A DNA stretch of 64,000 nucleotides, taken from positions 62,001 to 126,000 of the IMG/VR virus record IMGVR_UViG_3300017971_000190; one strand, written 5' to 3'. The notes beneath the pieces were generated by a model, which saw only the letters and a list, made by a program, of their open reading frames with translations, had not been told where the DNA came from and did not search any database. The position numbers and the translations under genes are program-made. Positions 1-55,776 of the stretch are shown here, piece after piece. Position 1 is the stretch's first letter. Each line of letters begins with the position of its first letter.

Positions 1-1
1 T

Positions 2-166: not shown

Positions 167-254
167 CAAACACAGTTTAATTACCCTTTCTTTTTTCTTT
201 AGCTCCCTTTTGTAAAACTAATTTGTTGGTCAATTAAAGTAGGAGAAGACCCAT

Positions 255-599
255 ATGGAACAGCCTACATGTGTTTATTTGGTTTACTGTGATAATTTGT
301 TTACAGGATTGACTGACTTACCGACACTAGAAAGAATATTTCTCAGTCAAGAAAAGGCGGAAGCTTACTTGGCTAAAAACCCTCGTCCTGGACAAATTGA
401 AAAGTGGTTTCTAGAAGATTTTTTCGAGAAAAACTCTGAAAATAAGAGGGTAAGTACAATAAATACAAAAGATACTTACGATCACGAAGTCCTTGCAAAA
501 GAAAATGAAGAAATTAAAGAGAGAACTAAACGCTTACGGGAAGCAGATCAAAAAAGGAAGAATCAGCGGATAAAACACCGTACCCCTAACTGGACGTGA
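255..599 (+). CDS. hypothetical phage protein
   Basis: AGGAG RBS at 241-245; N-terminal VYLV...IFLSQEKAEAY pattern similar to 13339..13866; stop overlaps the next start. Confidence 0.7.
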   Translation: MEQPTCVYLVYCDNLFTGLTDLPTLERIFLSQEKAEAYLAKNPRPGQIEKWFLEDFFEKNSENKRVSTINTKDTYDHEVLAKENEEIKERTKRLREADQKRKNQRIKHRTPNWT

Positions 600-2125: not shown

Positions 2126-2126
2126 A

Positions 2127-3102
2127 ATGACACCAGAAGAAAAAAATCGAATAGAAATAGGTTTGGATCTTGTTACTAAACGTTTAGCAGAGATTTTAGG
2201 ATTAGATGCTACTAATAAAGAAGTGTTAGAGGAACTATTTGTTAAAGTACAGTGTTATGGAGTAATGGATATAGCCGGTAAAGCAAAAATGGGTAGCACA
2301 CCTTCTGCAGAAGAATACTTAGAAAAATGTACCGAATCCATACTGAATATACAAAAGAATGTTGAAAAATAGTCAATAGAAATACAAATCACATACAATG
2401 GGATTCGTAACAAAATGATCTTGAACAAAACAAAATGACTCAATTTACAACAGTCTCCAAGTTATTCGTAGTCAAATGCAACAAGCACTTGACTCTGTTC
2501 CAGCTTCAGAGGCTAATAAGGATCACTTAAAAATACTAAAATCAACTATTGGCAGGTGGTCAAGTCTACTGGAAGGTGTTTGTCTAATGAGACAAAAAGA
2601 AATTAAGATAATTTCTCAATTGGATCCCAAAGTTGTTAGTCCGCCTTACAGTCCAGAAACTTTAGAACTGGCTAAGAAAGCTGCTGAACAAAAAGGTTGG
2701 TTAGAACGAGCTACCCCGGAAGAGAAGAAAGCTTGGGTAGAAAAACTGGCTAGAGATTTCGCTGCTGCTGGGGAAGCTGAATACAAAGTACTTAGAGAAG
2801 AAGGAATAACAAAAATGCCATCAGAAGAAAAAAGAAAAGAACAACTTCAAAAAGACATCGAGGATGGAAAAGTAGGTCATATGGAACATGACAGTGGTAA
2901 AAATTTACATTATTTAGCTGTTTGTACCTTCGTTTATATGTTGCTTGATAGTGATGCTAGAATGCAAGAAGTTTCCAGAGCTTTAGAATGTGCTCAAGGT
3001 GTAATTAAAGATAAAAATACAGAAATTACGACTGCCAATGTAGCTGCTGCAAAGCTGGCTAAAATATTAGTAGACGAGTTTCTTTGTGAGTCATTAGTTT
3101 GA
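2127..3102 (+). other. two hypothetical CDSs (2127..2372, 2476..3102)
   Basis: Co-directional ORFs in the packed gene chain; no recognisable motif. Confidence 0.6.
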
Positions 3103-3443
3103 TTTCTTCTACCACTACTAAAATTTGGCGACCGAAAACAGAAGGTGAAGTCTGTTGCTGTACCAATTTTCAATGGGGCAGTAATTGTCCCTCTTGTTTT
3201 GGTACTGGTTTTGCAGGTGGTTATGATTGTGTAGGAGTAGCAATACTTGAGGAAAGTTTCAGTTCTTATTACATTAGAGCGTTGTTCCAAATTAAAGTTG
3301 CAGATTTATTTGCTTACAATAATAGTGTTCATCAGGTGAGAACGGTACGACAGATGATGTTTTCAGACAGCTTTGAGATAAAGACAGAAAATCTTAATCT
3401 AATTTTCTACCAAATAGGCAAGTTAGTTGACTTGTTAAAATAA
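3099..3443 (+). CDS. Cys-rich neck/head-tail-connector-like paralog
   Basis: Motif WRPKTEGEVCCC...CPSCFGTGFAGGY, shared with 5207..5782 and the C-terminus of 18024..18923. Confidence 0.45.
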   Translation: MISSTTTKIWRPKTEGEVCCCTNFQWGSNCPSCFGTGFAGGYDCVGVAILEESFSSYYIRALFQIKVADLFAYNNSVHQVRTVRQMMFSDSFEIKTENLNLIFYQIGKLVDLLK

Positions 3444-3453
3444 GGAGACCACT

Positions 3454-3762
3454 GTGGACTCAATTAAAGACAAACCAAAACCAGGTCAAAAATGTAGGTA
3501 TTGTGCTGGAAAGGGAAAGTACAACAGTGAAGAGAAGTGCTACTGGTGTGAAGGTAGTGGTATAGAAAAAGTAATTTCAAATGATCTAAAACAGCACATT
3601 AAAAGGTTAAGAGTAGAGTACGATATTTTAACCACCTCAATTCATGAAATTTTTGACAAAAATGCAGAGGCTCTTAGTCTCACCCACCCTCGTTTGAGAG
3701 ACATGATCAAAGCTCGAAAACTGGTCCTGGAAACCATTATCCTTCTAAAGGAGAATCAGTAA
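3454..3762 (+). CDS. zinc-finger protein (CxxCxGxG repeats)
   Basis: CRYCAGKG and CYWCEGSG resemble DnaJ-type CxxCxGxG repeats; GGAG RBS before the GTG start. Confidence 0.6.
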   Translation: MDSIKDKPKPGQKCRYCAGKGKYNSEEKCYWCEGSGIEKVISNDLKQHIKRLRVEYDILTTSIHEIFDKNAEALSLTHPRLRDMIKARKLVLETIILLKENQ

Positions 3763-4479
3763 ATGCAAATAGAAACAGATTCCGAACTACTTAGAGCGGT
3801 AGTAGAAGGAAACAAAAGTGCTCAGCAACTCTTTGTTGAAGAGCTGTTTGCTGAAATAAAAAGCAACTTTGAAACCATGTTTTTGCCTTTTAAATGTATG
3901 AAGGCAGAAACTAAACCAACTCAAGATTGTCGATTGGCTGGTAAGGTTGATTTAATTGTAGATCCAATTACACAGTTTTCAGTGGTGGAAGATCTACCAA
4001 GTCAAGTAGAAATGCTTTTTAACGAACTGCTTGGTTCACTTCTGACTGCTTTTGAACCGGCAGTAAAGGGTTTGCTCACGGTTTGGAAAATTCCAGATAA
4101 TTTTATACTTACACCAGAAATACTCAAAAGCACTTTAAGTAATTATTCTTTTACACCTACGCATCTTTGGTGTGGATCTACTATGGTTAATTTTTTTATG
4201 TCTAGTAAGAGTTGGTATAAATTCTATGAGCCTACTACCACGTTAGAACAAGCTTCAGAGGGTCGCTTAGGTTTGCTTCGCGACATTGTAGAAAATCCTT
4301 TAGAACTATATACTGATTTGTTTCGTTATGATACATTAAGAACTTTAGATCCTGACGAGCTGGTAATTGTTTCTTCCTTCCAGCCTAAAAAAGTGTGGGT
4401 AGAGTGGAGTGACATAAAAAGACAAAAGGATGGCAGTTTTACAATTACCGCAACTCAATATGTAGGAGAGGTAGCTTAA
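3763..4479 (+). CDS. degenerate major-capsid-like protein (putative)
   Basis: C-terminal EPTTTLEQASEGRLGLLRDI...LYTDLFRYDTLRTLDPDELVIV resembles a large-phage capsid motif (DPVTQRELL..G..G.L.G..I.TD.FR....VL..GE..VV) recalled from memory. Confidence 0.45.
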   Translation: MQIETDSELLRAVVEGNKSAQQLFVEELFAEIKSNFETMFLPFKCMKAETKPTQDCRLAGKVDLIVDPITQFSVVEDLPSQVEMLFNELLGSLLTAFEPAVKGLLTVWKIPDNFILTPEILKSTLSNYSFTPTHLWCGSTMVNFFMSSKSWYKFYEPTTTLEQASEGRLGLLRDIVENPLELYTDLFRYDTLRTLDPDELVIVSSFQPKKVWVEWSDIKRQKDGSFTITATQYVGEVA

Positions 4480-4480
4480 A

Positions 4481-5244
4481 ATGGTTGAAGAAAAACAACA
4501 ACTAGTACCCATAAAATTGAAAGAAGAAAATTGCCCTCCGTTTTTGCTTGAGCTTTTAAAAATGGCTGAAGATAGTAGAGAAGAATATCCTGAAGAGGCA
4601 GGAAATGATCTCATTATTTTAGGAAGTGAAGCTATTGAAAAGCTTGGTAATTCCCTCTATGAAGTGGGTGTTGTTTTTCAGCTCAAGTTTAAAGGTAAAC
4701 CCTCGTTTAGAGTTGCTACCGTAGGCTAAAAATTTTTAGCTTGACACTACTAGCACCCTGTGATAAGGTGGGTTGTTACGCTAAGGATTAAGTGTGTGCC
4801 AGAAAATTTAAACTACAGTAAGTATGCTGGTTTTAAGATTCCTAATCACTGGCCACAGGTTTGTCCTTACTGTGGGTCTAAAAAATTGTGGCATGATTTT
4901 TCAATACCAGGTAGAGTTTTACAAAAGGCATTTTGCGTTGATTGTGAAAAAAGTTTTATTCCTCACCCCAGTATCAGATTTTGGAGACGATCATGAAAAA
5001 GCGACTACTTAAAAAGAGAAGGAAACGTGACCAAGCTCTCATGGCTGTTATCTTTGCTGATGCTGCAGCAGAATACATTCTCACTGGTTTTCCAAGTCAC
5101 CGTCCGAGCTACACCCCCCTCACACCAAAATCTACAAAAAGAGCTGTAAGAAAAACCATTAAAAAGATTAAGTTTCCAAAGAAGTACAAGTGGTTTGGTA
5201 CCATAAGTGGTCCCCTGGAAGAAAGAAGGTGCAACCGTGAGTAA
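4481..5244 (+). other. hypothetical CDSs 4481..4729, 4760..4996 (zinc ribbon, start uncertain) and 4981..5244
   Basis: Co-directional ORFs; CPYC...CVDC in 4760..4996. Confidence 0.55.
4741..4769 (+). promoter_or_regulatory. sigma70-type promoter
   Basis: TTGACA (4741-4746), 17-nt spacer, TAAGGT (4764-4769), in an intergenic gap. Confidence 0.7.
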
Positions 5245-5782
5245 GAAGAAAAATAATTTAATGGAACTCCCTAAGCAGGTACGCCAGAAGACAGTAGAGG
5301 AAGTTTTTATAGAAAAGGCCACAATCATTGTTTTTAAACCCCCTCTGACCGGTGCTGAGTGTGCTTGTCATGAAAAAATTATGGAACCAGCTGCCATTTG
5401 CCGAGAGTGTTACGGCACTGGTATTTTAGGAGGGTTTGATCTCCGAAAAGAAGTGATACCAATTGAAGAAGCTGCCTATGAAGAAATTGAGAAAGTAATT
5501 ACAGTTTTGGATACCACTAAAACAGACCACGCTTTTGCTTCTATGGATGATTGGGTTCTTCTCACTTTTGAGTGCCCTCTTCATTCGCATATTTATAGTG
5601 GATGTATTTTTGAGCTAAACAACAGATTTTGGAAAGTAACTAATGTAGAAGAAGAGTGTGAGGAAGACGCAGAAACAGGTGTTGGAAGACCTTATTGGGA
5701 AGTGCAGGCTCGCAAACTTCATGAATACGAACCAGCTTACATTTTTCTGGATGATAAACGTTGGAAAGGAGAAGAAAAGTGA
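5207..5782 (+). CDS. Cys-rich neck/head-closure-like paralog
   Basis: FKPPLTGAECAC...CRECYGTGILGGF followed by a beta-rich part (RFWKVTNV); likely start is GTG 5238. Confidence 0.5.
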   Translation: MVPWKKEGATVSKKKNNLMELPKQVRQKTVEEVFIEKATIIVFKPPLTGAECACHEKIMEPAAICRECYGTGILGGFDLRKEVIPIEEAAYEEIEKVITVLDTTKTDHAFASMDDWVLLTFECPLHSHIYSGCIFELNNRFWKVTNVEEECEEDAETGVGRPYWEVQARKLHEYEPAYIFLDDKRWKGEEK

Positions 5783-6804
5783 CAACCATTAAAGTAGGAA
5801 AATACAATGTAGATGTGGCCAACTTTAATTGTAATAGTGAGTTAGAGTGTTTTCAACTTGGTTTTGATAAAGGAACATTTGTACAAGGTCGTGGCTATGT
5901 AAAATACCACAAGAAAGAAAAACCGGTGTGCCAGACTCGGCACATTCACGGTTGCCCTCGTGTTGGTGTTTGTCTCGATTGCAGAAGTGTAATTAGTCCC
6001 AGTACAGCTTTAGCTGGAATTTGTTCTTGGTGTAGAGGTACAAATATTCAGTTAGACGAAAAGGATGCTACTAGTAATGATACCATTAAATGAATATGGT
6101 TATAAAAAAGGAATACTTTACGCTGACTGGGGCTGTCCTACTTGTCGTAAAGTTGTCTACCAAAATACTACTGAAGACGCTTTTAGTAAAGAGCGTATCT
6201 GTCACAGTTGTCAAAAAGCGAATAAAGAAGCCGAAAGACGATCTAAACATCTTTGGGAATTAGCCCAAACTGAACGTCCTCCCATTAGGTACAAAAACGG
6301 TATTTATGGAATTAGAGATGATCTATTTTCTTACTTGATTGGAATGTCTACTCCAGTTATAGATAGAAACTTACAAAGGCTTTACGCAAAGTCAGATCTT
6401 CAAATTCCTCAAAGGATTATCCCTACGCATCATAAAGAGTTTTAAAAATGAAACGGTTAACCAGAAAAATAGTTCATGAAGAATTGCTCCATTTTAACTT
6501 ATTTACTGTAACTCCGACTATTAGAGGATTTGATTTAGGCTATGGGCAAGACGGGTTTACAAGACTTCTAACAGGTGGTGGAATAGCTGGTAATGGTTAC
6601 AAGTGGTGGCTGTGCACTATTGGTGGAGTAACGCTTGCTGGCCCGCTTGTAACCAAAAAGCAGCTACAACGCTGTTTAAGGGAACACTTAGCTGGTTATT
6701 GTAATCGACCACAAGATCAATCTGGTTGGAGAACGTATGCCAGACTAAATAAAAATAAAAACGGAGAACATTACATTTGGGTGCAAAGCAGGATACCACA
6801 ATGA
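5761..6804 (+). other. hypothetical CDSs 5761..6093, 6065..6445 and 6448..6804
   Basis: Overlapping co-directional ORFs; the first two carry CxxC pairs. Confidence 0.6.
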
Positions 6805-7715
6805 CAACTAGCAGAGTTTTAAAATTAGCCAGACAAAAGTTAATCACTCCCCCACCATTCGTAGCCGGATCTATTCAGTACGAAGTAATTATGGGAAGTG
6901 AAGCATATGGAGTCTCTTCTGGAGATAGCGATAGAGACGTATACGGTTTTTGTGTCCCACCAAAGTCTATAGTATTTCCTCACACAGTTGGAGATATTCT
7001 AGGATTTGGACGACAGAAAAAACGATTTGAACAATATCAGCAACATCATGTTTATGACAAAGATGCTTTAGGTGGTAAAGGCGTTGAATATGATTTTTCT
7101 ATTTATAATATTGTAAAATATTTTAGTCTTTGTATGGAAAACAATCCGAATATGATCGACTCTCTTTTCGTTCCACAACGTTGTATTCTTTATATTACTA
7201 AAATTGGTCAAATGGTTAGAGAGAAAAGACAGTTGTTTCTTCATAAAGGTGCTTGGTTCAAATTTAAAGGTTATAGTTACAGCCAAATCAAAAAGATGAA
7301 AATTAAGAATCCGGAACCAGGAAGTAAAAGATATGAGAATATTAAAAAATTTGGTTTCGATGTAAAATTTGCTTATCATGTGGTACGTCTTCTTAATGAA
7401 GTTGAGGAGATTTTAGTAGAACAACATCTTACATTGGATAGAAATAGAGAACAATTAAAAGCAATTCGACGTGGAGAGTGGACTTTAGAACAAGTTGAAG
7501 ATTATTTCAATAAAAAAGAAGCAGAGCTTGAAACTGCTTATACTGAAAGTAAATTACAACACAGTCCAAATGAAGAAGTTATTAAAAATTTACTTCTCTC
7601 TTGTTTAGAAGAGTACTATGGTAATTTAGAAAACTGTGTTGAAATTCCCAATGCTGAGAAAGAGGCATTAAGAGAGATTGATAGAACTCTTGAAAAAGTA
7701 AGACACTGCTTATAG
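6801..7715 (+). CDS. DNA polymerase beta superfamily nucleotidyltransferase (RlaP/YcgL-like)
   Basis: GSEAYG...DSDRD signature (hG[GS]x9-13Dh[DE]), NNPN.ID.LF and helical C-terminus FDVKFAYHVVRLL; ATG 6801 overlaps the upstream stop. Confidence 0.85.
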   Translation: MTTSRVLKLARQKLITPPPFVAGSIQYEVIMGSEAYGVSSGDSDRDVYGFCVPPKSIVFPHTVGDILGFGRQKKRFEQYQQHHVYDKDALGGKGVEYDFSIYNIVKYFSLCMENNPNMIDSLFVPQRCILYITKIGQMVREKRQLFLHKGAWFKFKGYSYSQIKKMKIKNPEPGSKRYENIKKFGFDVKFAYHVVRLLNEVEEILVEQHLTLDRNREQLKAIRRGEWTLEQVEDYFNKKEAELETAYTESKLQHSPNEEVIKNLLLSCLEEYYGNLENCVEIPNAEKEALREIDRTLEKVRHCL

Positions 7716-27136: not shown

Positions 27137-27612
27137 CACCAGACAGACAAGTAGGCAGACAAACAGACAGATAAGGAGACAAGCATCATGTTCGCAAAAT
27201 TTGTGAATTACACAGAGGGTAACGGAGTCCTAAGCCCTAAAGGATTCAGACCAACCGTTCCAAAAGTGAACAGCGTTTACGAAGCTTCGGAAGTAATTTA
27301 CGGTAAGAAGTGTTTTCGTAATTTTGAAGAATACATGAAGTGGATGGAAGATAGCGGAGATAGTCCAGCAGAAACAATTGGGTTTCCTTTGGTTAAAGAT
27401 GATCTTTTTGAAGTTGTAGCTACCCGTATTTACAATGAGAAAAATGGAGAAACAACAGTTCGAGTAGTGCACGCCATAGGCTGTGAATTTTACCTGCTTA
27501 ATGATGAAGGTAAAACTATAGATCGCGTGTGGTGTGCCAACGGTGAAGAACAGAAAAAGATGTTAAAAGAACATATTAACGAATAGTTAACTTAATTTTT
27601 GTCTGTCTGGTG
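27137..27612. repeat. 14-bp perfect inverted repeat pair flanking ORF 27188..27586
   Basis: CACCAGACAGACAA (27137-27150) is the exact reverse complement of TTGTCTGTCTGGTG (27599-27612). Confidence 0.85.
27188..27586 (+). CDS. hypothetical protein with a YLLNDEGKTID domain
   Basis: AAGGAG RBS; C-terminal motif shared with the N-terminal domain of 28431..30002. Confidence 0.75.
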   Translation: MFAKFVNYTEGNGVLSPKGFRPTVPKVNSVYEASEVIYGKKCFRNFEEYMKWMEDSGDSPAETIGFPLVKDDLFEVVATRIYNEKNGETTVRVVHAIGCEFYLLNDEGKTIDRVWCANGEEQKKMLKEHINE

Positions 27613-27678: not shown

Positions 27679-28326
27679 ATGTCACAAACCAAAACAAAAT
27701 ACCCCAGGACGTTACACCTTCCTTGGTCCCCGGGAAGAAGTAGGGATGATTTGGTTCTCACTTCCACCTCTCATTTTGAGGGGCAACAAGTTGTAATTAC
27801 TGAAAAAAGAGATGGTGAGAATACCACCATTTATCCTTTCACCGTACACGCTCGTTCTCTAGACTCCGCTTATCATCCTTCCCAAAGTTGGGTACGACAA
27901 CTTCAAGCTCAAATTGGTCACGAAATTCCAGCTGGCTGGAGAATCTGTGGGGAGAACCTTTATGCCGAGCACAGTATTCCCTACCACGTCACCAATTATT
28001 TTGAAGTGTTCTCTATTTGGGATGAAACTAACACGGCTCTAAGCTGGAATGCTACTCAGGAATGGGCAGATCTCTTAAATCTTCTGACAGTTCCTGTTTT
28101 GTTCCAAGGGGAATGGCCCGGAAAAGAGTTTCTAGATGAGCTGTGGCAACATTATTGTCAGAAAATGGATCCTGCCTTGGTTGAAGGATACGTTGTACGG
28201 TTAGCAGGACGTTTTTCTTACGATTCTTTCTCGGCTTCGGTGGCCAAATTTGTTCGTCCCGATCACGTACAAACTGACGAGCACTGGAAAAAGAATTGGA
28301 AGCCTAACCAACTCGTCCAGTCTTGA
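27679..28326 (+). CDS. ATP-dependent RNA ligase family protein
   Basis: KYPRTLHLPWSPG, TEKRDGEN (motif I KxDG), ICGENLYA.HSI, EGYVVR and KFVR..HV motifs. Confidence 0.85.
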   Translation: MSQTKTKYPRTLHLPWSPGRSRDDLVLTSTSHFEGQQVVITEKRDGENTTIYPFTVHARSLDSAYHPSQSWVRQLQAQIGHEIPAGWRICGENLYAEHSIPYHVTNYFEVFSIWDETNTALSWNATQEWADLLNLLTVPVLFQGEWPGKEFLDELWQHYCQKMDPALVEGYVVRLAGRFSYDSFSASVAKFVRPDHVQTDEHWKKNWKPNQLVQS

Positions 28327-28430: not shown

Positions 28431-30002
28431 ATGATTTTGAAAATCATCCCCATCCGTCCCGCTGGAAGACCACATCTGAAAAATATTAATCGTTACGTAG
28501 AAGGTTCTGAATTTTCAATAGAGCTTCATACGTTTAATGACGAAAAGACGTATGAGGCTTGGCTTGTAGAAAGAACCTCCATAGAAAGTATTGAGCACAG
28601 TACACTAAATATTCACGATTATAAAGGATTGGACAGCTGGCAAGTATTTGTCGTAGATGTTGAGAATTTCTTAGATGGAGACTTTGTTGTTTCTACTCAA
28701 ACCATTCTTTGCAATCGTATATTTCTGCTTAACGACAAGGGAAAGACAGTAGACACATTTAACACAACAAATCCATTAGTATTTCCTAGAAAGCGAGAAA
28801 ATGAAACTAAATTCATAGATGGACATGGAGGTACTGTTGAAATAGAAGATGGAAAAATTAAACATACTACACCATTAAAAAATGTTTTTGAATTAAAAAA
28901 TGTTTTTGATGGACTGAAAGAAAGTGTGGGGCAAGAATTTAGAAAAAGGCAAGAATTCGTAGCAAATTTAACTGAAGAACAAGAAAAAGAACTTGGAGCG
29001 CATTTTTATGGTGGTAACATTGGAGGGAAGGTAGAGGTTATAGAAGGGGTAACAGTCAAACCTTTAACTGTCGATAAACCAACTCCTTGTCCCTCCATTC
29101 TTCATTGGTGTACAGAACTGAAATATCTGGGCGGTAAAAATGTTTGGCCAGAGAATTTAAAAACTTTACTAGCTGCTTTTCAGGAACAGTGCCCCTCTTG
29201 TGGAGCTGCCCTTCGTTACGGTCGTTGTGTTCTTTGTGATAAATCCAAACAAGAATTATTTTCTCACCCGATCAATGAGGTAGTAGGAATTAGAGGGCAA
29301 CGCACTGGTAGCAGCTTTCTATCGGCCATAGCTGCTACCTACCAGTTACAAAAAATACTCTCTTTAGATATGAGTTTAAGTACCTACTATGATATGCCTC
29401 CTACGGAATTTGAAATGGTACTAGTAGATCCAGGAAAACATATTTGGAATCACTTTTGGGAATTAATACACAATTCACCTTGGTTTGAGCAATACTGGAG
29501 TTTCTTAAAAAATGCAGTTAATTGGGGTTTCAGTAGACCTAGCAATGATAAAGCTATTTTTACTGCCAACGAAAAGACGAATTTAATTGTACGAAGAGGA
29601 GGAGTGGAAGAGAACTACAAAGGAAAAACCAGAATTTTTGCTGCCATAGATGATCCAGATTGGGTAGATTGTTATGGTAATAAAGATAAACGGGTTCCTA
29701 TAGTAGATATTTATACAAGCCTTAAGAGTAGCCTTTCAACGGTGAAAAAGAAAGCTAACGATCAAAATTATAAATTGCAACCCTTGTTGTGGTTAATGGG
29801 TCCTCCTAACGGAGAAGGTGTAACTAAAAGTCTTCTTAGAAAAATAAAACAAGCTAAAAAGAAAAAAGTCAACCAACTAATTCTACATCAACCAACTTGG
29901 GAAATTAATCCAGAAACCAGCGAGGAAGAACTACGGAAAGAAGCCAGAAATGATGCAGAATTTCGTCGTGACTTTGGTGCTGAATTTGTAAAAGTGAAAT
30001 AA
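28431..30002 (+). CDS. fusion of an N-terminal LLNDKGKT domain and a degenerate terminase-large-subunit ATPase domain
   Basis: NEVVGIRGQRTGSS (Walker A-like, lacking Lys), SPWF, KGKTRIFAAIDD (Walker B DE to DD), HQPTWEINP and RRDFGAEF follow large-phage TerL order; ends before any nuclease domain. Confidence 0.7.
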   Translation: MILKIIPIRPAGRPHLKNINRYVEGSEFSIELHTFNDEKTYEAWLVERTSIESIEHSTLNIHDYKGLDSWQVFVVDVENFLDGDFVVSTQTILCNRIFLLNDKGKTVDTFNTTNPLVFPRKRENETKFIDGHGGTVEIEDGKIKHTTPLKNVFELKNVFDGLKESVGQEFRKRQEFVANLTEEQEKELGAHFYGGNIGGKVEVIEGVTVKPLTVDKPTPCPSILHWCTELKYLGGKNVWPENLKTLLAAFQEQCPSCGAALRYGRCVLCDKSKQELFSHPINEVVGIRGQRTGSSFLSAIAATYQLQKILSLDMSLSTYYDMPPTEFEMVLVDPGKHIWNHFWELIHNSPWFEQYWSFLKNAVNWGFSRPSNDKAIFTANEKTNLIVRRGGVEENYKGKTRIFAAIDDPDWVDCYGNKDKRVPIVDIYTSLKSSLSTVKKKANDQNYKLQPLLWLMGPPNGEGVTKSLLRKIKQAKKKKVNQLILHQPTWEINPETSEEELRKEARNDAEFRRDFGAEFVKVK

Positions 30003-30015
30003 AGGAGAGTAAATA

Positions 30016-32171
30016 ATGCTACTCCAAGAAAAAATCTGGCAAAACCGTTTTGATTTTCGTGGCATTTACGCTTGTGAATTTTGTGGCTCTACACAAGAAG
30101 AAGGTAGTTGTTATGATGACGACTACTTTCACAATACAGTTACGCCCACAAAAATACGCTGCCAAGCTTGTGGTTTAACCACAGCTGAAGGAAAAGACAA
30201 AGAAACAAACTTCCAAAAAGTAGAATTGGTACTGAGTGACGAAACACTCTCACTTTGTAAAGAATTAGAAGAGCATTACAAATTTGGAGAACGGCTTGGT
30301 AGTAGATCTAAGCTGTTCGAAGAAGCTCTAAAATTGTATCATTTCTACTACCATGAGGTTCAAACTATGGGAAAGAACCTCTACACCGGTTTCACTTTTG
30401 GTACAGCTGAAGAAATCAGAGTTGCAGATGGAAAAGTAGAGTTGGTAAAGGAGGAAAAAAGTCATGAGTAGTAAAAAACTCAAGTACATGAGTGTTAAAG
30501 AATTTCGTGAAAATGGTCTTCTTTTTGAGGTTAATCGTCTAGTACTTCACCCCTTAGGATTGGCTCTTTCTGTTGACGTGAAAGGAGATGGAACAGAAAG
30601 CTTTGCAGAAATTTGGGATAATCGAGAAGACCCAGAAGGAATTTGCTTTGCACCAGAAACATTCTTAAATGGAAAGAAGAAATTTCATCAGTACATGAAA
30701 GACAAAGGGGATGATGCTTTACGGACGAGAGATAGAAAATTAGGTTACACCATTCAAATCGAATCTGGAGAGGAGTAGTTAGTTATGCGAGAAGTAATGA
30801 TTTACGAACCAGGGGAAGAAGTTCGTTATATTGGAAAATCACTTAAAATTGTACTTCCGGTAGATGGTGCTTGGGTAGCAGGAAGACCCGAAAGTTCTCC
30901 GTTTTGCCGAGCTTTGGTAGAGTTTAAATTCACACTAGAAGCAAATACAACAGGAAAAGTAGTACCACCTCCTTTAGGAGGTGAAGAGAACATTTCGTTC
31001 TGTTACGTCAGATTTGATGGTCATTTGTACAATACTATTATTCCTATTAATTATGAAGATTTAGAAATTGTGTAAAAATGACTACTGAAATTCACTGTAG
31101 CTTCTGTAGTAGTATCATACTTGGACCAGGTACTGAGTTTTGTCATAATTGTATTAACCTTAAAAAGGAATTCCTCAGAGTAGAAGAAAAAGAAAGGTAC
31201 AAATTATTTTACGATTATATTGATGCTGCCCAACTTAGAGAATTGAGAACTGTACTTCAAAAAGAAATTGGAGATCCCACTCAGTACAGTTACGCTTCTT
31301 GGCTTATCTATTTCAATCCTGATCGTACTGCTGTTACGGTAGAACTGTGGTACAAAAAAGACTTTCATTGTTTTGCACTTACCACGGAGGAGTTAAAAAA
31401 GTTCCTCAGAAAACGTCCTCCTTGGCGAAAGTACTTTGGACCCTATCAGTTAGACAAGGCAGACAAAGAGACTTTTAAAGCCAGTGTTGTGGAAATGTTA
31501 GCAACACTTAGCCCAATTATTATTCCTTCTGGAACTCTTCTTACTACCTGTCCAGTTTGTGAAAAAGAAGGTAAGAAACCAAAAACTTTCATAACTGATG
31601 GTCCTACCTACGCAAAGCCTATGGAACCACCACCCTTTACTGATAAAGAGGGTGTTAGACACTGGCACCTGGTTGGTTTCTCTACAATTTACTATCAGTG
31701 TTCTAACGATCATCGTTGGTATGTAAATCACTACCTACCTTGTATAGCTCCAGGTTGCATTTATGGTAAAGAATCCAAAATAGAGATTTTAAAATGAAAC
31801 CAAAATTAATAGATGAACTTCTAAAAAGAGCTGACAAGTGGATCACTCAGGCTTTAGGAGATCCAGAAAATTACATTCCACCTTGGGATTTAACAAACGA
31901 TAAACCAGTTGACATTTGGATAACAGCAGCTTCTTACTTACTCATAAAGTTGCTAGAACTTAAAGCTGTCAGTGAAGGTGAACAGACAACAGCTCTTTAC
32001 GACTCTACTGCTGTGGGTGTACTTTGTCGAGCTAGGCACCAAGGTAAACCTGTAGAACTTATTTTGAGATCTCAATTGGGGTTGAATAAAGAAGAATCTC
32101 TAGTTATTTATCTCGTTCCTATAACTAGTGATGGTGAACGGGATTGGGAACAACCACCAGCTTATGCCTAA
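30016..32171 (+). other. hypothetical CDSs 30016..30471, 30464..30778, 30785..31075, 31078..31797 and 31794..32171
   Basis: Co-directional ORFs with RBSs and overlaps. Confidence 0.65.
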
Positions 32172-32856: not shown

Positions 32857-35800
32857 GTGTCTTCCCTTCCCAAAACTTACGGTCGTTTTTGGCTTAAAGA
32901 TTCTACTTGGCATGTGGCTTGTGAACCACATGTCATGATTAGATTAAAGCGTACTTTTGACAAAGTACGAAAAGACCAGTACGATGTAATTACTCTAGCA
33001 GACTCTCCAGAAACCTGCCGTGAACTTCTTTGGTTCACCCTTCGTTTTCCTCTCACTGCTATTGATGAACCCACCCAATTTTACCTGGAAGAGCAAGCTG
33101 AAAAACATGAAAGGGAGGAGAAGGAAGTACACCTGCTACTGAGCGGTGAGGTGGAACCCAAAAACTTTAAACTTCGTTTGCCTCTTCGCCCATACCAACG
33201 TATTGCCACCGATTTAGCTCTTAAAACAGGAGGATTATTAATTGCTGACGATCTCGGAACTGGAAAGACTGCTTGTATTATTGGTATGTTTACAGATCAA
33301 CGTACCAGACCAGCTTTAGTTGCTACTCTTGCACATCTCACTTATCAGTGGCAAGCTGAAATAAATCGCTTCGCTCCTGAACTTACCACTCACATAATTA
33401 AGCAGGGAAAGTTTTACCAATTTTCTAAAGACAACATTTTTCCAGATGTTCTTATAACTAGTTATTACAAGTTGCATAGTTGGGCTGAGCATTTAGCTGG
33501 AAAAATTCGTTGTGTAGCCTTTGATGAAATACAAGAACTAAGACATGGAGAAATGAGTTTAAAAGGTTCAGCATCTTTTCATATTTCTGATCAAGCATCT
33601 TTCAGAGTCGGCGCTAGCGCTACTCCATTTTATAATTACGGCGCTGAAATGTTTAATATTATGAAAGCCCTTCGTCCTGGAGTACTAGGGACTTTCTCAG
33701 AATTTGCTAGGGAGTGGCTCAGCTGGGATGGTAAAAAACTAAAAGATCCCAAAGCATTTGGAACCTATCTTCGCGATCATGGTTATATGATTCGTAGAAC
33801 CAGAGAAGATATTAGGAGAACTATTCCCACCCTTACTAAAGTTCCACATTGGATTGATTTTGATTTTGAAGCTCTCGACGCTTTAAAATCATCGGCAGAT
33901 GAATTGGCTCTTTCTATTGTTCGATATGATCCAACTATTGATGAAGAGACACAAAAAGACAAATTCGCTAGAGAAAATGAATTCAAGCAACTTTTACGAC
34001 AAGCAACTGGAATTGGAAAAGCTCCCTATGTTGCAGAATTTGTCCGCATGCTTGTGGAAACTGGTGAACAAGTAGTTGTATTTTTGTGGCACCGCGAATG
34101 TTATTCGATACTAAAAGATCGTCTTAGTGATTATAAACCATCTATGTATACAGGTTCGGAAAGTCCACAACGAAAAAGAAAACAGTTTAATCGTTTCGTG
34201 AGAAAAGAAACTCCAATATTGTTAATTTCTCTCCGCTCAGGCGCTGGACTAGACGGTCTTCAATATCATTGCCGCACTGTCGTTTTTGGAGAATTAGATT
34301 GGTCCCCCGGAGTTATGGAGCAATGCTTAACAATGGAAACAGAAATTTTAACTAAAAAAGGATTTTGCAAAGAAAATGAAGTAGAAGTTGGAGATGAAGT
34401 AGCCGCTTTTGATATAAAAGATAGTAGTATTAAATGGAAGCCAGTTCTGCATAAAGTTTGTAGAAAGTTAGGTAAAAAAGAAAAACTTTTTTACACAGAG
34501 ACGAAAAAAATGGCTTTTAAAGTTACTGGAGATCATAGACTTATTGTGCGGCGTAGTAGACGCACAATTTCAGGAGAAAATAGGTCTGATTGGAAATTTA
34601 AATTAGCAAAGGACGTAGCTGGTAAAAATAGACGATTTGTTCCTACGTGTGGTTTGGAAAAAACTATAGGTGTTGATCTCACAAGTTATGAATTAAGGTT
34701 TTTAGGGTGGTATATTTCTGACGGAAGTTTTAATGGTAATCAAGTAACCATTTACCAAGCTGCTCATCAACCTTGGAATGATGATATTGTAGAAGTTTTA
34801 AATGGTTGTGAATTTACTTGGTATAGATATGAAAGGATTAATACCAACGGTAATTTGTTATATATGTATTGTGTACCAAAAGGGAACGTACAACGTTGGA
34901 CTAAAAATGAAATAAGTACATTCATAAAAATGAAGAAAAAAGGAGTTTCTTATAAAGAAATAGAGGAAAAAATTAATAGACCTAGAAGTAGTCTTTATAA
35001 AAGGTGGGCAAAATTTAAATCGGGTTACAAATATGAATTGATTCCTCCCAAAAATCGAACTACTAAGGGTTGGGAATATTTAGAAAAATATTTAGACAAA
35101 AATTTAAGTCCACTTCTAGAAAACGTTACTCGTGAACAACTAATAAATATTATTCACGGACTTTATATGGGGGATGGTACTAAAAATGAAAGTCGTGAAA
35201 ATGTGGTAATGATTGGCGGTACTAACAAAATTCTTTTCGATCGTCTGCAATCATTATGTGTAAGACGTGGGATGTCTGCTACTATATCTACACACAAAAA
35301 ACCAAAAGATCCGAATAGAAAAATCTCACATACTATTTATATATCTAAATTTGAAGATGCTTACATACCCGGTCCTAATAAACCTAATGTATTGTCAGAA
35401 GTGGAACCAACAAAAAATGAGAAAGTTTGGTGTGTTACAAATGAATTAGGAACATTGGTTACCAGGTATAATGGTAAAGTTGCTGTAGTTGGAAATTGTA
35501 TAGGTCGGGTACATAGAGACGGACAACTAGATGACGTAACAGCTTACTTTTTGTTAGCCAATGGGGGAAGTGATCCTTACGTTTCAGAACTGTTAGGAAT
35601 TAAAAGAGCCCAAATAGAAGGCGTCAAAGATCCAGAAGGTGCCGTTCTTCCCAATTACGATTTAGATAACGTTTCTGTAAAAGAACTAGCGCTTAACTAC
35701 ATGAACCAACGACAAGAAGGAAAGGCGGTAGAAGTCATGCCAACAAACAGAAAAAATTTAGAAACTTATCCTTTGGAAAGTGAAGAGAGTAACATTAAAG

Positions 35801-36042
35801 CCTACTTAACGGACGAAATTAAAATTGAGTTGTCTGAAGGTTTAGCCAATTTTACAAAGGAGAATGATCTGCTAGATCTTATTGACAAAGAACTACTAAC
35901 AGGTTTCTTAAATTCCCTTGGTTTAAAACCCTCTAAAAAGCTGCATAAAAAATTGGTTAAAAATTTGTGCCTGTCTCTTTTAGAAGCTGCTTGTAGAGCG
36001 ACTATCAATGATCGAAAAGTAATTAAAACACATGACTTGTAG
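32857..36042 (+). CDS. SNF2-family helicase/ATPase, intein-containing
   Basis: LIADDLGTGKT (motif I), FDEIQELR (II), SATP (III), GAGLDGLQ (V) and Q/CIGRVHRDGQ (VI, split by the intein). Confidence 0.92.
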   Translation: MSSLPKTYGRFWLKDSTWHVACEPHVMIRLKRTFDKVRKDQYDVITLADSPETCRELLWFTLRFPLTAIDEPTQFYLEEQAEKHEREEKEVHLLLSGEVEPKNFKLRLPLRPYQRIATDLALKTGGLLIADDLGTGKTACIIGMFTDQRTRPALVATLAHLTYQWQAEINRFAPELTTHIIKQGKFYQFSKDNIFPDVLITSYYKLHSWAEHLAGKIRCVAFDEIQELRHGEMSLKGSASFHISDQASFRVGASATPFYNYGAEMFNIMKALRPGVLGTFSEFAREWLSWDGKKLKDPKAFGTYLRDHGYMIRRTREDIRRTIPTLTKVPHWIDFDFEALDALKSSADELALSIVRYDPTIDEETQKDKFARENEFKQLLRQATGIGKAPYVAEFVRMLVETGEQVVVFLWHRECYSILKDRLSDYKPSMYTGSESPQRKRKQFNRFVRKETPILLISLRSGAGLDGLQYHCRTVVFGELDWSPGVMEQCLTMETEILTKKGFCKENEVEVGDEVAAFDIKDSSIKWKPVLHKVCRKLGKKEKLFYTETKKMAFKVTGDHRLIVRRSRRTISGENRSDWKFKLAKDVAGKNRRFVPTCGLEKTIGVDLTSYELRFLGWYISDGSFNGNQVTIYQAAHQPWNDDIVEVLNGCEFTWYRYERINTNGNLLYMYCVPKGNVQRWTKNEISTFIKMKKKGVSYKEIEEKINRPRSSLYKRWAKFKSGYKYELIPPKNRTTKGWEYLEKYLDKNLSPLLENVTREQLINIIHGLYMGDGTKNESRENVVMIGGTNKILFDRLQSLCVRRGMSATISTHKKPKDPNRKISHTIYISKFEDAYIPGPNKPNVLSEVEPTKNEKVWCVTNELGTLVTRYNGKVAVVGNCIGRVHRDGQLDDVTAYFLLANGGSDPYVSELLGIKRAQIEGVKDPEGAVLPNYDLDNVSVKELALNYMNQRQEGKAVEVMPTNRKNLETYPLESEESNIKAYLTDEIKIELSEGLANFTKENDLLDLIDKELLTGFLNSLGLKPSKKLHKKLVKNLCLSLLEAACRATINDRKVIKTHDL
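34324..35496 (+). mobile_element. intein with LAGLIDADG homing endonuclease (391 aa)
   Basis: Starts CLTMETEILT (block A), has VTGDHR (block B), FLGWYISDG and HGLYMGDG (LAGLIDADG), and VWCVTNELGTLVTRYNGKVAVVGN followed by +1 Cys. Confidence 0.92.
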
Positions 36043-51858: not shown

Positions 51859-52276
51859 ACGTGAAAAATCTCACATAGATTGGAAATTTCTAATCGTCTC
51901 CAATCTGCTTCTGTTTCAGCAGCTTCTTCGTACCCGTTTTTTAACCCTTCAATTTCTCCCACGTCAGGGAAGCAATCAAGCTCTTTTGGCAGTTCCTCCA
52001 GTTTGTGGAGCACAGTCTCGTCATCGTAAAACATGGTTTTTGTCCCTTTTAGAGTTGTAGTATCCATTGGTCAATTATGACTACATTACCATTATGTATA
52101 ACTAATTTGTAATCCCCACCTAAAAGATCTGGGTTTTCATGCTTAAACTTAGCAATTAAGTATTCCGCTGTCATCTGTGATAAAGAACCCAGTTCTAATG
52201 TACCCTCCTTTACTCCAAATACAGAGCTGGTAGCCGTCCAGGTCAACGTAACCGGTGTTTTTCTAGTGTTGTGCAA
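51855..52276 (-). other. two small hypothetical CDSs (52049..52276, 51855..52067)
   Basis: Minus-strand pair with a GAAGGA RBS, downstream of a minus-strand TTGACA at 52345-52350. Confidence 0.6.
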
Positions 52277-52321
52277 AATCGAGTTCCTTCCAAAATACAG
52301 GTTCTAGCACCTAGTAATACG

Positions 52322-52350
52322 AGCCTGGCACACTTTTGAGATCGTGTCAA
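52322..52350 (-). promoter_or_regulatory. possible divergent sigma70-type promoter
   Basis: Minus strand TTGACA, 17 nt ending TGC, CAGGCT. Confidence 0.4.
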
Positions 52351-52479
52351 GTTTTCTTCTCTTTTTAATCGCACTGTAATTTTATTTTACAAATACAAAA
52401 ATAATTTTTAGTTGAAGGCAGTAATTTCAAATAGTTGGACTTATTCCTAAAAATAGGACAGTCTACTTTTCTTTTTTGG

Positions 52480-52508
52480 TTGACAAACCGTTGTTTTACT
52501 GTTACAAG
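52480..52508 (+). promoter_or_regulatory. sigma70-type promoter of parB
   Basis: TTGACA, 17 nt ending TGT, TACAAG; RBS GGAGA before ATG 52554. Confidence 0.6.
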
Positions 52509-52553
52509 ATAATAGAGAGTTGAAAACAAAGTTTCTACAACGGAGAAATTAAA

Positions 52554-53591
52554 ATGACCGAAACCAACGAAATTCCTACCGACAACAAGAAGATCAAGCA
52601 CAGCCACTACAGCCTGTACCCTGAGGCTTTTCGTCCGATGATGGTACCCATTCAGGAGGAGGAGGATGCCACCGTTCGGATGAATATCCGAAACGAGTTC
52701 AGTGAAGATGAGGAGGACTGGGAGGATTTCAAGAATTCCATCAAAGAGTTTGGGATTCTTCAGCCTCTCTGTGTGGCTCCCAACCCCGACAAAACCAACG
52801 GTGTCAAGTATCTGATCATTTTCGGTGAGCGGCGTTGGCGCGCAGCTCGGGAGCTGACCGAAGAGGGGCATCCTGTTCGTGTTCCTTACGTCATCGATAC
52901 CCCTGCCAAGGACGCCGATGAGGAGGAGACGAAGCTGCGTCAGTTCAAGCTCATGGCGTTGGAGAATATCCAGCGTAAGGACTTGACTCACATGGAAAAG
53001 GCTCGTCTCATTTCCACTCTCGAAGACAATGGAATGTCCGTCGAGAAAATCTCGGACATGCTCAACAAGAGTCTGCCGTGGGTCTACAACTACCGCACGC
53101 TCGCGAAAGACGCCAACGAAGAGGTGCAGCAGAAGCTGGCGGAAGGTCGGATCACACAGCAAGCAGCGCTGGACATCGTAAGAAATCATGATCGCGAGTC
53201 TCAGGCAGCCGCGCTGAAGACCGTTCTTTCTCAGGCCAAGTCTCGGGCTGCTACGACGCGAGCTGCCCAGGGCATCAGCGGAAAGAAGATGAACAGCACG
53301 CCTCCGAAGAAATACGTCCAGGCTGTGGTGGACACCCTGCGTGAGGCGGAAGACCTGGAAGGCGTCATGAGTCTGGACGACGCACAGATCCTGCTCGTCA
53401 CCGTGATGCAGTGGGTGCAGGGGAAGAAGGCCGACGTGACGCTGAAGAAGCAGCTCAACGCAGCTTTCGACGGTCAGCTCAACACCCGTGACATGTTCGA
53501 CAACCGGCCGCGTGTGAAGAAGGAGAAGGTGTCAAGCAAGCTAGAGGAGAGCGACAAGCAGACGGAGGAGAACACTTCCGACAGCGAGTAA
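52554..53591 (+). CDS. parB: ParB/RepB/Spo0J family protein
   Basis: SIKEFGILQPL, YLIIFGERRWRAA (CTP-binding box), ENIQRKDL..MEKA and a following HTH (SVEKISDMLNKSLPWVYN). Confidence 0.9.
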   Translation: MTETNEIPTDNKKIKHSHYSLYPEAFRPMMVPIQEEEDATVRMNIRNEFSEDEEDWEDFKNSIKEFGILQPLCVAPNPDKTNGVKYLIIFGERRWRAARELTEEGHPVRVPYVIDTPAKDADEEETKLRQFKLMALENIQRKDLTHMEKARLISTLEDNGMSVEKISDMLNKSLPWVYNYRTLAKDANEEVQQKLAEGRITQQAALDIVRNHDRESQAAALKTVLSQAKSRAATTRAAQGISGKKMNSTPPKKYVQAVVDTLREAEDLEGVMSLDDAQILLVTVMQWVQGKKADVTLKKQLNAAFDGQLNTRDMFDNRPRVKKEKVSSKLEESDKQTEENTSDSE

Positions 53592-53603
53592 TTAATTTCA
53601 CTC

Positions 53604-53813
53604 TACCCGTTGCGTGCTAGGGACGTAGGTTCAAACCAACAACGGGTAACGAGACCAATTAGCAATTGGTCTAGTGAGGACGAGACCTCATGATGAGAAG
53701 CCGAGTAGCTCTCGGTAAAAAACGGGAGTAGTTACGACCTAACGTACCGTGCCGTGAGACACGTGGAAATAAGCTGGAGATTAACAATCGAAGAAAGCGG
53801 ATTTCCAATCTCA
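53604..53813 (+). ncRNA. candidate structured non-coding RNA (unassigned family)
   Basis: Consecutive stems TACCCGTTG/CAACGGGTA, AGACCAATT/AATTGGTCT, TGAGG/CCTCA, CCGAG/CTCGG, GTTA/TAAC, CGTG/CACG and GAGATT/AATCTC in a GC-rich gap with no ORF. Confidence 0.6.
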
Positions 53814-53839
53814 CATTTTTAATTTGGAGAAAAAGTCAA

Positions 53840-54197
53840 ATGCCAAAAAAAGCAACTTATTATTGTATTCGTTGTCTTCTGAAGGGAAGAGAAACTTTTT
53901 GGTCACCAGAAGACGACTTCCCTGATCAGTGTCCTCATTGTAAAATGCATACTTGGAGAACAGACTACGCAGGAGTTATTGAGTACATCAAAAACATGAG
54001 AACAGAGGCAGATGCAATTGAAGAGACGTTCAACAAAATCACAGGAAAAGGTAGAAGAACCTAATCAATCAGGACTGTATTGTCCAAAGCACGGATTTAT
54101 TCCAGAAGGGAAAATTACAACTGTAAAAACTTGTGGAATCTGCATGGAAGAACGTAGTTGTTCAGCAAACGACGCAACAATTTTGCAACGCAGATAA
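53840..54197 (+). other. two small zinc-ribbon CDSs (53840..54064, 54012..54197)
   Basis: CIRC...CPHC and CPKH...CGIC; GGAGA RBS. Confidence 0.6.
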
Positions 54198-54212
54198 AAA
54201 GGAGAAACTATC

Positions 54213-54404
54213 ATGTACAAGTGCGACAAGTGTGGAAACAGTACCGGAGCTGGCCAGGAGCTGATTTGAAGGGTAGTGCAAACCCGCTACAAGGAGTACC
54301 CGGAGCGCAAGGACAAGCGAGGGAACATCATCGATGAGGGTGGTGATGGGCGAGAAATCGTCAAGGAGCTGAAGCTCTGCCCCTCATGTGCTACCGACGC
54401 TTAG
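54213..54404 (+). pseudogene. zinc-ribbon gene interrupted by an in-frame TGA (pseudogene or readthrough)
   Basis: AAGGAG RBS; MYKCDKCG...ELI*RVVQTR...KELKLCPSCATDA, with TGA at 54267-54269 between the two CxxC halves. Confidence 0.75.
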
Positions 54405-54439
54405 ACCTTCTTTTCTCTCCTTCCACTTTGTAAAAACTG

Positions 54440-54468
54440 TTGACACTGCTCCACATTAGTGGTAGCAT
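54440..54468 (+). promoter_or_regulatory. sigma70-type promoter with extended -10
   Basis: TTGACA, 17 nt ending TGG, TAGCAT; CCACAT/ATGTGG inverted repeat straddles the -10. Confidence 0.75.
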
Positions 54469-54517
54469 GTGGTAATAGTGAATCCAAATTCCAATCACCA
54501 AACCAAAGGAAAACTTT

Positions 54518-55636
54518 ATGGACAAGGCAACTTATGAGAAAATGCTGGCTAGAATTTCTGACCGTACTCAGGATGTAAGAGCTACAGCAGGAGAGCTACT
54601 TAATTGTTGGGGTTTCGATTTGGAAGCCCGCCGTCCTGGGGTGGCTTACGTTACCGAAGCTGGTACTCAAGTCACCAATCTCGACATGGCTTGCATTCTC
54701 TCCAAGTTGGTGGAGTGGGGAAGTGTTATTGACCTTAGCACCTACAAGGCTCTTGGTCCTGCTACCAAGCGAGAAGGGGAAATCGTTACCAGCAAAGACC
54801 ACAGACACGGAAAAATTCTTAGTCTCATTGCCCATAGTGAGGTTTTTAACTTTTCTATCCGAATTATGGATATGAATGTGATGACAGCTAAGGATACAGG
54901 AAATTACCGTAATTTCCTCCTCATGCATGATCGCCAGTGGCATGAGGGTTTCCGAAGCCTCACCTTCATTCCTACCGAGATGGAAAAAGAGCTGCTGGCA
55001 AAGATTCCCAGCAACGGTAACACTACCGTTTTCGAGCATTTCATCAGTCCCAATCGTTGGCCTAGCCTTTACGGTCGCTACTACATTCTGGCCAAGGCTC
55101 TTATTCCTCGTCTAAAGGACGAAATTAAATTCCTGAAGAGTGAAATCAACCGACTAATTAAAGCTCTTTCCATTTCTACCGAACCGTGGCCCAAGACAAC
55201 TAGAGGTGCGAGTGCTCCGAAAAAGGTTTGGAAATTTGAAGCTGAGGTAGCCAATGTGAAGGAGCTTCATGGAGACTATACTACTTTCCCAACTACCCAA
55301 GATGGATATGATGAAGCAAAAAACCTAAACAGCCGGCTCAATGGGTTTAAAGAGCAGCTCTCTTTCCAGATTTGCGCTACTGAGTTCTCTTTCTTTGAAA
55401 AAGTGCTCGCTAAGTGCAACATGAGCGATGATGACTTCATCGCGTGGATTGGAGATGGTAGCAATAGCAACTTCATTCCCAAGGCTGCTTGGGTAAATGA
55501 TAAAGAGTGGATGAGCTGGAGGAAAAGCAATAGAAGTAAGCCTTGGATGAGCATGAACATCGATCCTGATAACGGTCTAGCTCTTCGCTGGAAGCCGGGT
55601 AAGAAGACCATTCAGGTAGCTCCTGACCAGGCTTAA
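54518..55636 (+). CDS. hypothetical protein (probable early gene)
   Basis: Long ORF behind a strong promoter and AAGGA RBS; more C/G-ending codons than its neighbours. Confidence 0.75.
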   Translation: MDKATYEKMLARISDRTQDVRATAGELLNCWGFDLEARRPGVAYVTEAGTQVTNLDMACILSKLVEWGSVIDLSTYKALGPATKREGEIVTSKDHRHGKILSLIAHSEVFNFSIRIMDMNVMTAKDTGNYRNFLLMHDRQWHEGFRSLTFIPTEMEKELLAKIPSNGNTTVFEHFISPNRWPSLYGRYYILAKALIPRLKDEIKFLKSEINRLIKALSISTEPWPKTTRGASAPKKVWKFEAEVANVKELHGDYTTFPTTQDGYDEAKNLNSRLNGFKEQLSFQICATEFSFFEKVLAKCNMSDDDFIAWIGDGSNSNFIPKAAWVNDKEWMSWRKSNRSKPWMSMNIDPDNGLALRWKPGKKTIQVAPDQA

Positions 55637-55776
55637 AAAGGAAATTGATGTTTAATTTTATAATTAACTTTGGATTGGCTTGGTTAACAGGCTACATAGT
55701 AGTAAATTCAGGTTTACGACTATACCAATATATTAAAATTGGTAAAGTGATAAACAATCTAGAAAGATAGAACAAC

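Follow-up and report, generated by a model that had tools for sequence, protein, structure and literature searches.

A jumbo phage with a canonical large terminase gene also encodes a second terminase-like protein, reduced to the ATPase domain and predicted to be non-catalytic

The locus and its features

We analyzed a 64 kb window (the whole stretch of DNA under study) that covers roughly positions 62,001-126,000 of IMGVR_UViG_3300017971_000190, which corresponds to the JGI contig Ga0180438_10000059 (221,679 bp). An ENA assembly of 298,061 bp, offset by +76,488, implies a phage genome of at least 298 kb. The window holds an ATG-initiated ORF encoding a 523 aa protein, in which a zinc ribbon and altered versions of the ATPase motifs of large terminases (TerL) follow one another in the expected order, including an SPWF motif, and in which the stop comes five codons after RRDFGAE (Table 1). 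The observation made in an earlier note from the sequence alone therefore held, as the motifs it listed, their positions and an 18-nt in-frame duplication in the linker were all found as described. The duplication is real but looks incidental. It lies in a linker that is poorly modeled and poorly conserved. In this genome, the gene sits among DNA and RNA metabolism genes, including RNA ligase, SNF2 helicase and nucleotidyltransferase genes. A scan for promoters and terminators gave nothing informative upstream of the gene. Read-through into the downstream ORF (30016-30471) was rejected because this ORF is in a different frame, matches phrog_14808 of unknown function and does not hit the TerL profile described below.

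Table 1. Features of the pseudo-terminase locus. Positions are those of the 64 kb window.
Position	Strand	Feature	Supporting observations
27188..27586	+	Stand-alone 132 aa paralogue of the N-terminal module, two genes upstream	BLASTP and local HMM; no PHROG hit
28431..30002	+	Whole gene, 523 aa non-catalytic (inferred from sequence) TerL-ATPase paralogue	Identical protein on 5 contigs from the JGI, ENA and Logan assemblies; 0 differences between contigs from two runs
28431..28775	+	N-terminal module (aa 1-115) of unknown fold; shared with P0002 and P0001 but not with P0004	aa 8-114 resemble the ORF 27188-27586 (BLASTP E=1e-6; local HMM); low pLDDT; no usable hit in the atlas search
28776..29075	+	Variable linker (aa 116-215)	pLDDT mostly below 55; in P0001 and P0002 a CxxC...CxxC segment or a long insert takes its place
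28874..28909	+	Exact 18-nt in-frame tandem duplication (LKNVFE/LKNVFD) inside the linker	TRF: period 18, 2.0 copies, 100% match
29088..29999	+	TerL-homologous region: zinc ribbon plus ASCE ATPase fold (predicted), ending at the ATPase/nuclease domain boundary	tblastn with the NCTB TerL; family HMM positions 47-381; pLDDT above 90; Foldseek
29190..29237	+	Zinc ribbon CPSC...CVLC (C254, C257, C266, C269), retained	Four Cys columns 98-99% conserved in canonical TerLs and kept in all clade members
29295..29315	+	Degenerate Walker A, GQRTGSS (aa 289-295): Gly and Arg kept, Lys replaced by Ser294	Lys column 100% conserved in 94 canonical TerLs; S, N, N in the three aligned clade members
29631..29663	+	Degenerate Walker B, RIFAAIDDPDW (IFAAIDD at aa 402-408, nt 29634-29654): Asp407 kept, catalytic Glu replaced by Asp408, new clade-specific P409-D410	Glu column 99% conserved in canonical TerLs; D, N, S in the clade
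29784..29813	+	Degenerate coupling (C) motif, LLWLMGPPNG, in place of the canonical NISSPS	First Ser 96% conserved in canonical TerLs; Gly (G457) in all clade members
29892..29984	+	Retained end-of-ATPase-domain signatures PTWEINP (aa 488-494) ... RRDFGAE (aa 512-518)	T, W, N, P, R, D and A columns 90-100% conserved in canonical TerLs and kept in the clade

Homology to the large terminase ATPase domain

To determine whether the protein is a true TerL homologue, we first compared it with profile databases. Pfam and NCBIfam returned nothing for this protein or even for canonical members of the family, although PF27249 was absent from the Pfam copy searched. PHROGs gave a match to phrog_17415 (terminase large subunit) at E=6.5e-16, but only over profile positions 402-645 of 940. 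An exhaustive phmmer search then found 387 relatives at E≤0.001, of which a handful are close and short, while behind them lies a large cloud of 650-750 aa TerLs at about 30% identity that continue for another ~300 aa. An HMM that we built from 40 canonical TerLs matched the protein at E=7e-52, over HMM positions 47-83 and 110-381 only, a region that represents the zinc ribbon plus the ATPase domain, whereas canonical relatives in the same scan reached about 637-666. The 40-sequence alignment itself was too diverse to be used for a pattern scan. The AlphaFold2 model has pLDDT values above 90 from about residue 215 to 520 and low confidence for the N-terminal ~215 residues. Its best PDB matches by Foldseek are the T4 gp17 ATPase domain (2o0h and 2o0j, E about 2e-6), followed by full-length gp17 and the herpesvirus terminase. 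No nuclease domain was found in the ORF, and no other ORF of the 64 kb window hit the TerL HMM, indicating that no nuclease domain of this family is encoded nearby.

Residues 8-114 of the N-terminal part resemble the ORF two genes upstream, which is the only paralogue in the ~125 kb of this genome that was searched. An atlas search with the N-terminal 215 aa scored only about 0.7, below noise level.

Loss of catalytic residues

In canonical relatives, the Walker A position is Lys in 116 of 116 motifs extracted by regular expression, and the residue after the Walker B Asp is Glu in 94 of 94, leaving aside the short degenerate proteins and two regex artefacts or short entries (P0040 and P0068) that were not inspected. 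We then audited the 43 ATPase-region positions that are at least 85% conserved in 94 canonical TerLs. Of these, 24 are identical in all three aligned degenerate proteins, including the four zinc-ribbon Cys, the P-loop Gly and Arg, the Walker B Asp, TW..NP and RD..A. Another 11 are partly kept, and eight are lost in all three, including the Walker A Lys, the Walker B Glu, the first Ser of the SSP coupling motif and an upstream invariant Gln. Decay is hence targeted. The Lys and Glu positions differ among clade members, so they are unconstrained. By contrast, nine residues are invariant within the clade yet occur in at most 5% of canonical TerLs, and four of them (R288, P409, D410, and G457) directly flank the old Walker A, Walker B and C motifs, suggesting that the cleft has been remodeled and then fixed, not merely eroded. 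In total, 69 positions in the ATPase-region columns are invariant within the clade, 45 of them matching the canonical majority.

A canonical terL in the same genome

We next searched for the authentic terL. Among 34 hits of a search for homologous proteins, none lay on the 221,679 or 191,078 bp contigs. We walked rightwards along the source contig, crossed a strand switch into a block of large minus-strand genes, and found an ORF matching the TerL HMM at E=3.7e-130, nuclease domain included. The complete gene lies at about 181,133-183,463 of the contig on the minus strand (5212-7542 of the retrieved stretch L020) and encodes 776 aa with CYSC...CPVC, WGQRSGKS, IIDELGWF, NISSPSS, ATWEVNP, LRDFYAIPP and nuclease motifs. 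It matches phrog_17415 at E=2.8e-94 over profile positions 405-882 and is followed by genes for a small zinc-ribbon protein of 127 aa, the portal (2074-4389 of the retrieved stretch L019; phrog_16240, E=8e-73) and the head maturation protease (phrog_18299, E=3e-38). It also matches the annotated TerLs of cultured jumbo phages such as PaBG at E about 1e-57. The protein described here is therefore not the packaging enzyme but a second copy, about 90 kb away from the packaging module, which shares only 25% identity with the resident TerL (E=5e-18).

A small clade under purifying selection

Four relatives share the same defects, as P0001, P0002, P0004, and P0005 (our labels for the relatives retrieved) all lack the Lys, the Glu and the nuclease. 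P0001 is 78% identical over 411 aligned codons (74% by BLASTP), and its apparent truncation is a scaffold gap. P0002 (52-58% identity) has 764 aa, with a large insert and a C-terminal zinc-finger tail, while P0004 (40-44% identity) has 535 aa with an unrelated N-terminus and P0005 is a fragment. All end just after the RDFGA motif. Pairwise dN/dS in the TerL-like domain is 0.14 for the query versus P0001 (dS 0.62, not saturated) and 0.18 for the query versus P0002. Only five sequences define the clade, however, and three of them are close relatives. The clade was not found in any cultured phage, so it is accessory.

P0004 lies at 255,723-257,330 on a 349,793 bp contig, IMGVR_UViG_3300018080_000098. 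A pattern scan with the resident-TerL clade found a fully canonical TerL on that same contig at about 270,022-272,103, on the same strand and 12.7 kb apart, with GQRSGKS, DELGW and NISSPTS. It covers HMM positions 8-662 and is 47% identical to the resident TerL. Hence, two jumbo phages carry both forms. In the same ATPase columns, the two canonical copies are 51% identical and the two degenerate copies 40%. Three other TerLs considered as possible members of these two phages (P0007, P0078, and P0052) were ruled out, as all lie on unrelated contigs. The two phages share no conserved neighboring gene, and synteny was also absent with the phages whose terL neighborhoods were compared (NCTB and those of stretches L010 and L011).

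In FastTree phylogenies, the degenerate proteins are monophyletic (support 0.97-0.999) and group, at support 0.997-0.999, with P0006, a complete 312 aa ORF that consists only of the zinc ribbon and ATPase domain and still has Gln, Lys, Glu and Ser. Root-to-tip lengths are about 2.2-2.3 for the short clade against a median of 1.43 for canonical TerLs. A first tree placed the short clade sister to the resident-TerL clade (0.78), but with denser sampling this placement collapsed (0.31, with a different sister group), and we therefore make no claim of in-lineage duplication versus acquisition. P0006 lies 12 nt from a tRNA-Leu gene in GC-rich DNA, so it may be part of an integrated element or a prophage remnant. 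As a single sequence, it should not be over-read as an intermediate.

Interpretation

Taken together, we propose that the gene encodes a pseudo-enzyme, a non-catalytic paralogue of the large terminase that consists of the TerL zinc ribbon and ATPase fold, without the nuclease domain and without the residues needed to bind and hydrolyze ATP, fused to a lineage-variable N-terminal module. Our analyses establish that it is a second copy beside an intact terL, that it is conserved in a small clade of jumbo phages and that it is under purifying selection. In contrast, the loss of ATP binding and hydrolysis is inferred from sequence, and so is the view that the protein acts by binding and not by ATP-driven translocation, using a TerL-shaped surface with a remodeled cleft. 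We give this reading, both what was established and what was inferred, a probability of about 0.6, which does not extend to the identity of a partner, for which there is no direct evidence. Our favored but weakly supported guess is something that normally engages the TerL ATPase domain, such as DNA, a neighboring TerL subunit or a packaging cofactor. On that tentative view, the protein would modulate or interfere with packaging as a non-firing subunit, either the phage's own packaging or that of co-infecting relatives. The 12.7 kb between the two genes in the P0004 phage bears on this view, as does the co-occurrence of several phages with related TerLs in the same sample (for example IMGVR_UViG_3300017971_000275 and _000344). 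However, the distance from terL in the present genome, the surrounding DNA and RNA metabolism genes and the absence of a conserved neighbor speak against it.

The earlier note had read the gene as a pseudo-terminase selected for shape without activity, and this core interpretation was supported in each part that could be examined, by the dN/dS values and by the catalytic-site-specific loss of conserved positions. The conditions it had set for its own refutation, an absence of TerL homology or a gene that is the only terL of the genome, were checked and did not apply. Its suggested link to Avs sensors was not supported by any evidence here.

Among the alternatives, as an immune decoy or blocker, the reading at which the earlier note hinted, the protein would mimic the terminase ATPase fold to occupy terminase sensors (Avs1-3, Upx) without activating them. 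In its boldest form, it would be expressed before the real TerL, engage the sensors through the conserved ATPase-fold surface and fail to license their oligomerization, because the ATP/Mg feature is gone and a bulky variable N-terminal domain is attached, thereby protecting the authentic terminase from detection. It would then be the first anti-defense protein built by disarming the very molecule the sensor recognizes. The retained fold without its active site, the location among non-structural genes and the N-terminal domains that vary between members, as might be expected in an arms race, are compatible with this view, and Avs1-3 and Upx do sense the terminase largely through its ATPase domain (PMC13601566). 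We nevertheless consider it unlikely. The two described stand-alone TerL-like phage proteins, T4 vs.8 and Ksap2, activate Avs2 and do not inhibit it (PMC13601566, PMC11564622). Moreover, SeAvs3 and EcAvs2 read active-site features, the latter through a bridging ATP that contacts terminase-bound ATP and Mg (PMC13601566), which this protein probably cannot hold, so that binding should be weaker, not tighter. We found no paper describing a terminase-mimic decoy or a catalytically dead TerL paralogue. A protein lacking the ATP site would be expected to be seen less well by such sensors, which fits immune evasion by an accessory paralogue at least as well as it fits a decoy. In a second alternative, a vs.8-like stand-alone paralogue would work in nucleic-acid metabolism, unrelated to packaging, and would have lost its ATP site because the function did not need it and because that site is what terminase sensors read. 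T4 vs.8 shows that such paralogues exist in early gene clusters and are sensed by EcAvs2, P0006 is an ATPase-only relative with intact residues, the gene sits among RNA ligase, helicase and nucleotidyltransferase genes and the zinc ribbon is retained. This remains possible but doubtful, since there is no evidence of nucleic-acid binding, the clade-specific invariant residues around the old cleft suggest a new constraint and not mere loss, and P0006 may not be a true intermediate.

A decaying duplicate without function could account for the loss of catalytic residues and nuclease and for the recent 18-nt duplication, but it is very unlikely given the intact reading frame in five members at 40-78% identity, the low dN/dS, the 69 invariant positions and the confident model. 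That the protein is the real packaging ATPase working with a separately encoded nuclease has nothing in its favor beyond TerL homology, and is refuted by the complete canonical terL beside the portal and protease genes, in line with the three missing motif residues and the absence of any ORF in the window that hits the nuclease part of the family HMM.

TerL is treated as the universal, single-copy, immutable hallmark of tailed phages, which is why it is used for phylogeny and why bacterial sensors (Avs1-3, Upx) target it. A conserved and selected second copy that keeps the TerL shape but has had its catalytic site specifically removed shows, as far as can be inferred from sequence, that the fold can be reused for a non-motor role. 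It also provides a natural construct for asking which TerL features immune sensors really need (fold versus bound ATP/Mg) and whether dead subunits can regulate or sabotage packaging motors. In practice, such copies can mislead terL-based annotation, marker-gene phylogenies and phage-completeness tools.

Comparison with known systems

Non-catalytic paralogues occur within P-loop ATPase assemblies, for example the clamp-loader delta-prime subunit, in which the ATPase fold and several conserved arginines are retained while nucleotide-binding residues are lost, and which is maintained by selection as a binding subunit. This analogy is conceptual only, as there is no evidence that the present protein joins the TerL ring. 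The closest known proteins are the TerLs of jumbo phages of the phrog_17415 / Pfam PF27249 (MJ0330_N) type, such as those of Pseudomonas phage PaBG, Phage NCTB and this genome's own TerL. The protein is homologous to them over the zinc ribbon and the whole ATPase domain, with the same order of landmarks, and its predicted fold matches the T4 gp17 ATPase domain. It differs by the missing nuclease domain, the replaced Lys, Glu, Ser and Gln, an extra N-terminal ~215 aa, its location outside the packaging module and its status as a second copy only 23-25% identical to the resident TerL. T4 vs.8 (219 aa; PMC13601566) is likewise a stand-alone TerL-ATPase-domain paralogue encoded away from the terminase gene, among non-structural genes, beside an intact TerL. 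However, vs.8 keeps Walker A (GGRQSGKS) and Walker B (IIDEP) and has neither a zinc ribbon nor an N-terminal extension. It shows no significant sequence similarity to this protein or to this TerL family (best BLASTP E about 0.6; -0.2 bits against the family HMM), so it arose independently. The protein described here is thus a TerL-derived pseudo-enzyme that is analogous to, but distinct from, vs.8-type stand-alone ATPase paralogues.

Genomic context of the degenerate TerL paralogue

An RNA ligase gene (PF09414), which carries the KxDG motif as EKRDGEN, was found immediately upstream of the degenerate terminase gene. The two genes are separated by a 104-nt gap, in which no promoter or terminator was detected on the + strand. 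The protein encoded downstream (151 aa) has CxxC...CxxC motifs and matches phrog_14808 (unknown function, E=1.7e-14). A gene of 146 aa occupies the same position in the locus of the relative P0001, while another relative, P0002, instead carries a zinc-finger tail fused to its C-terminus.

Further along the window, a 1061 aa SNF2-family helicase is interrupted by an intein-like insert. Its Pfam annotation lists SNF2-rel_dom, with DEAD weak and ResIII and LAGLIDADG_3 only faint, and the sequence shows a Cys-initiated insert ending in ...VVGN before CIGR. We also observed a GC-rich island (0.44-0.47 as compared with about 0.35-0.40 elsewhere) containing a ParB-like gene (phrog_1033, E=1e-30) and a long overlapping antisense ORF; this may be a horizontally acquired segment.

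In the source contig Ga0180438_10000059, gene orientation flips at about position 129 kb into a minus-strand virion module of large proteins (932, 950, 1012 aa and others; DUF5661 and DUF5662), most of which have no PHROG hit. The genes terL, portal and protease lie at the head of this module. As an ENA assembly of the same phage reaches 298 kb, the 222 kb UViG is probably incomplete.

Features of the phage genome and of related loci
Location	Strand	Feature
Window 27679-28326	+	RNA ligase gene
Window 30016-30471	+	Downstream 151 aa protein
Window 32857-36042	+	SNF2-family helicase with intein-like insert
Window 52001-56000		GC-rich island
Window 52554-53591		ParB-like gene
Window 52365-53189	-	Long overlapping antisense ORF of the island
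Window 60065-60622		ORF related to the HNH protein of the phage carrying P0004
Ga0180438_10000059, about 129-183 kb (stretches L013-L020)	-	Virion module
L007:7413-8441 (stretch of the 350 kb phage)		Surroundings of the P0004 copy
L023:975-1061 (stretch with P0006)		tRNA-Leu(aag) locus beside P0006
L002, MT366761.1, positions 1-1136		TerL-coding stretch of Vibrio phage vB_VcorM_GR11A

Related loci and the wider TerL family

In the 350 kb phage carrying P0004, another relative of the degenerate protein, the P0004 copy is surrounded by genes with ARPP-1/ARPP-2 domains, an XRE-type HTH regulator and an HNH endonuclease. The HNH protein is 51% identical to the product of an ORF in the window. P0006, the ATPase-only relative that keeps its catalytic residues, ends 12 nt from a tRNA-Leu(aag) gene in GC-rich DNA, suggesting an integrated element in a cellular genome and not a jumbo phage.

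The deposited record of Vibrio phage vB_VcorM_GR11A starts inside its terL gene, and the TerL-coding stretch at the record start is unannotated. Our local TerL HMM matches it over positions 11-450, up to the end of the record. Lastly, many TerLs of this family, among them the canonical relatives P0143, P0159, P0172, P0176 and P0177, are 1000-1300 aa long and carry intein or homing-endonuclease domains (PF14528, PF14890), and in the alignment the large insertions fall inside the Walker A motif.
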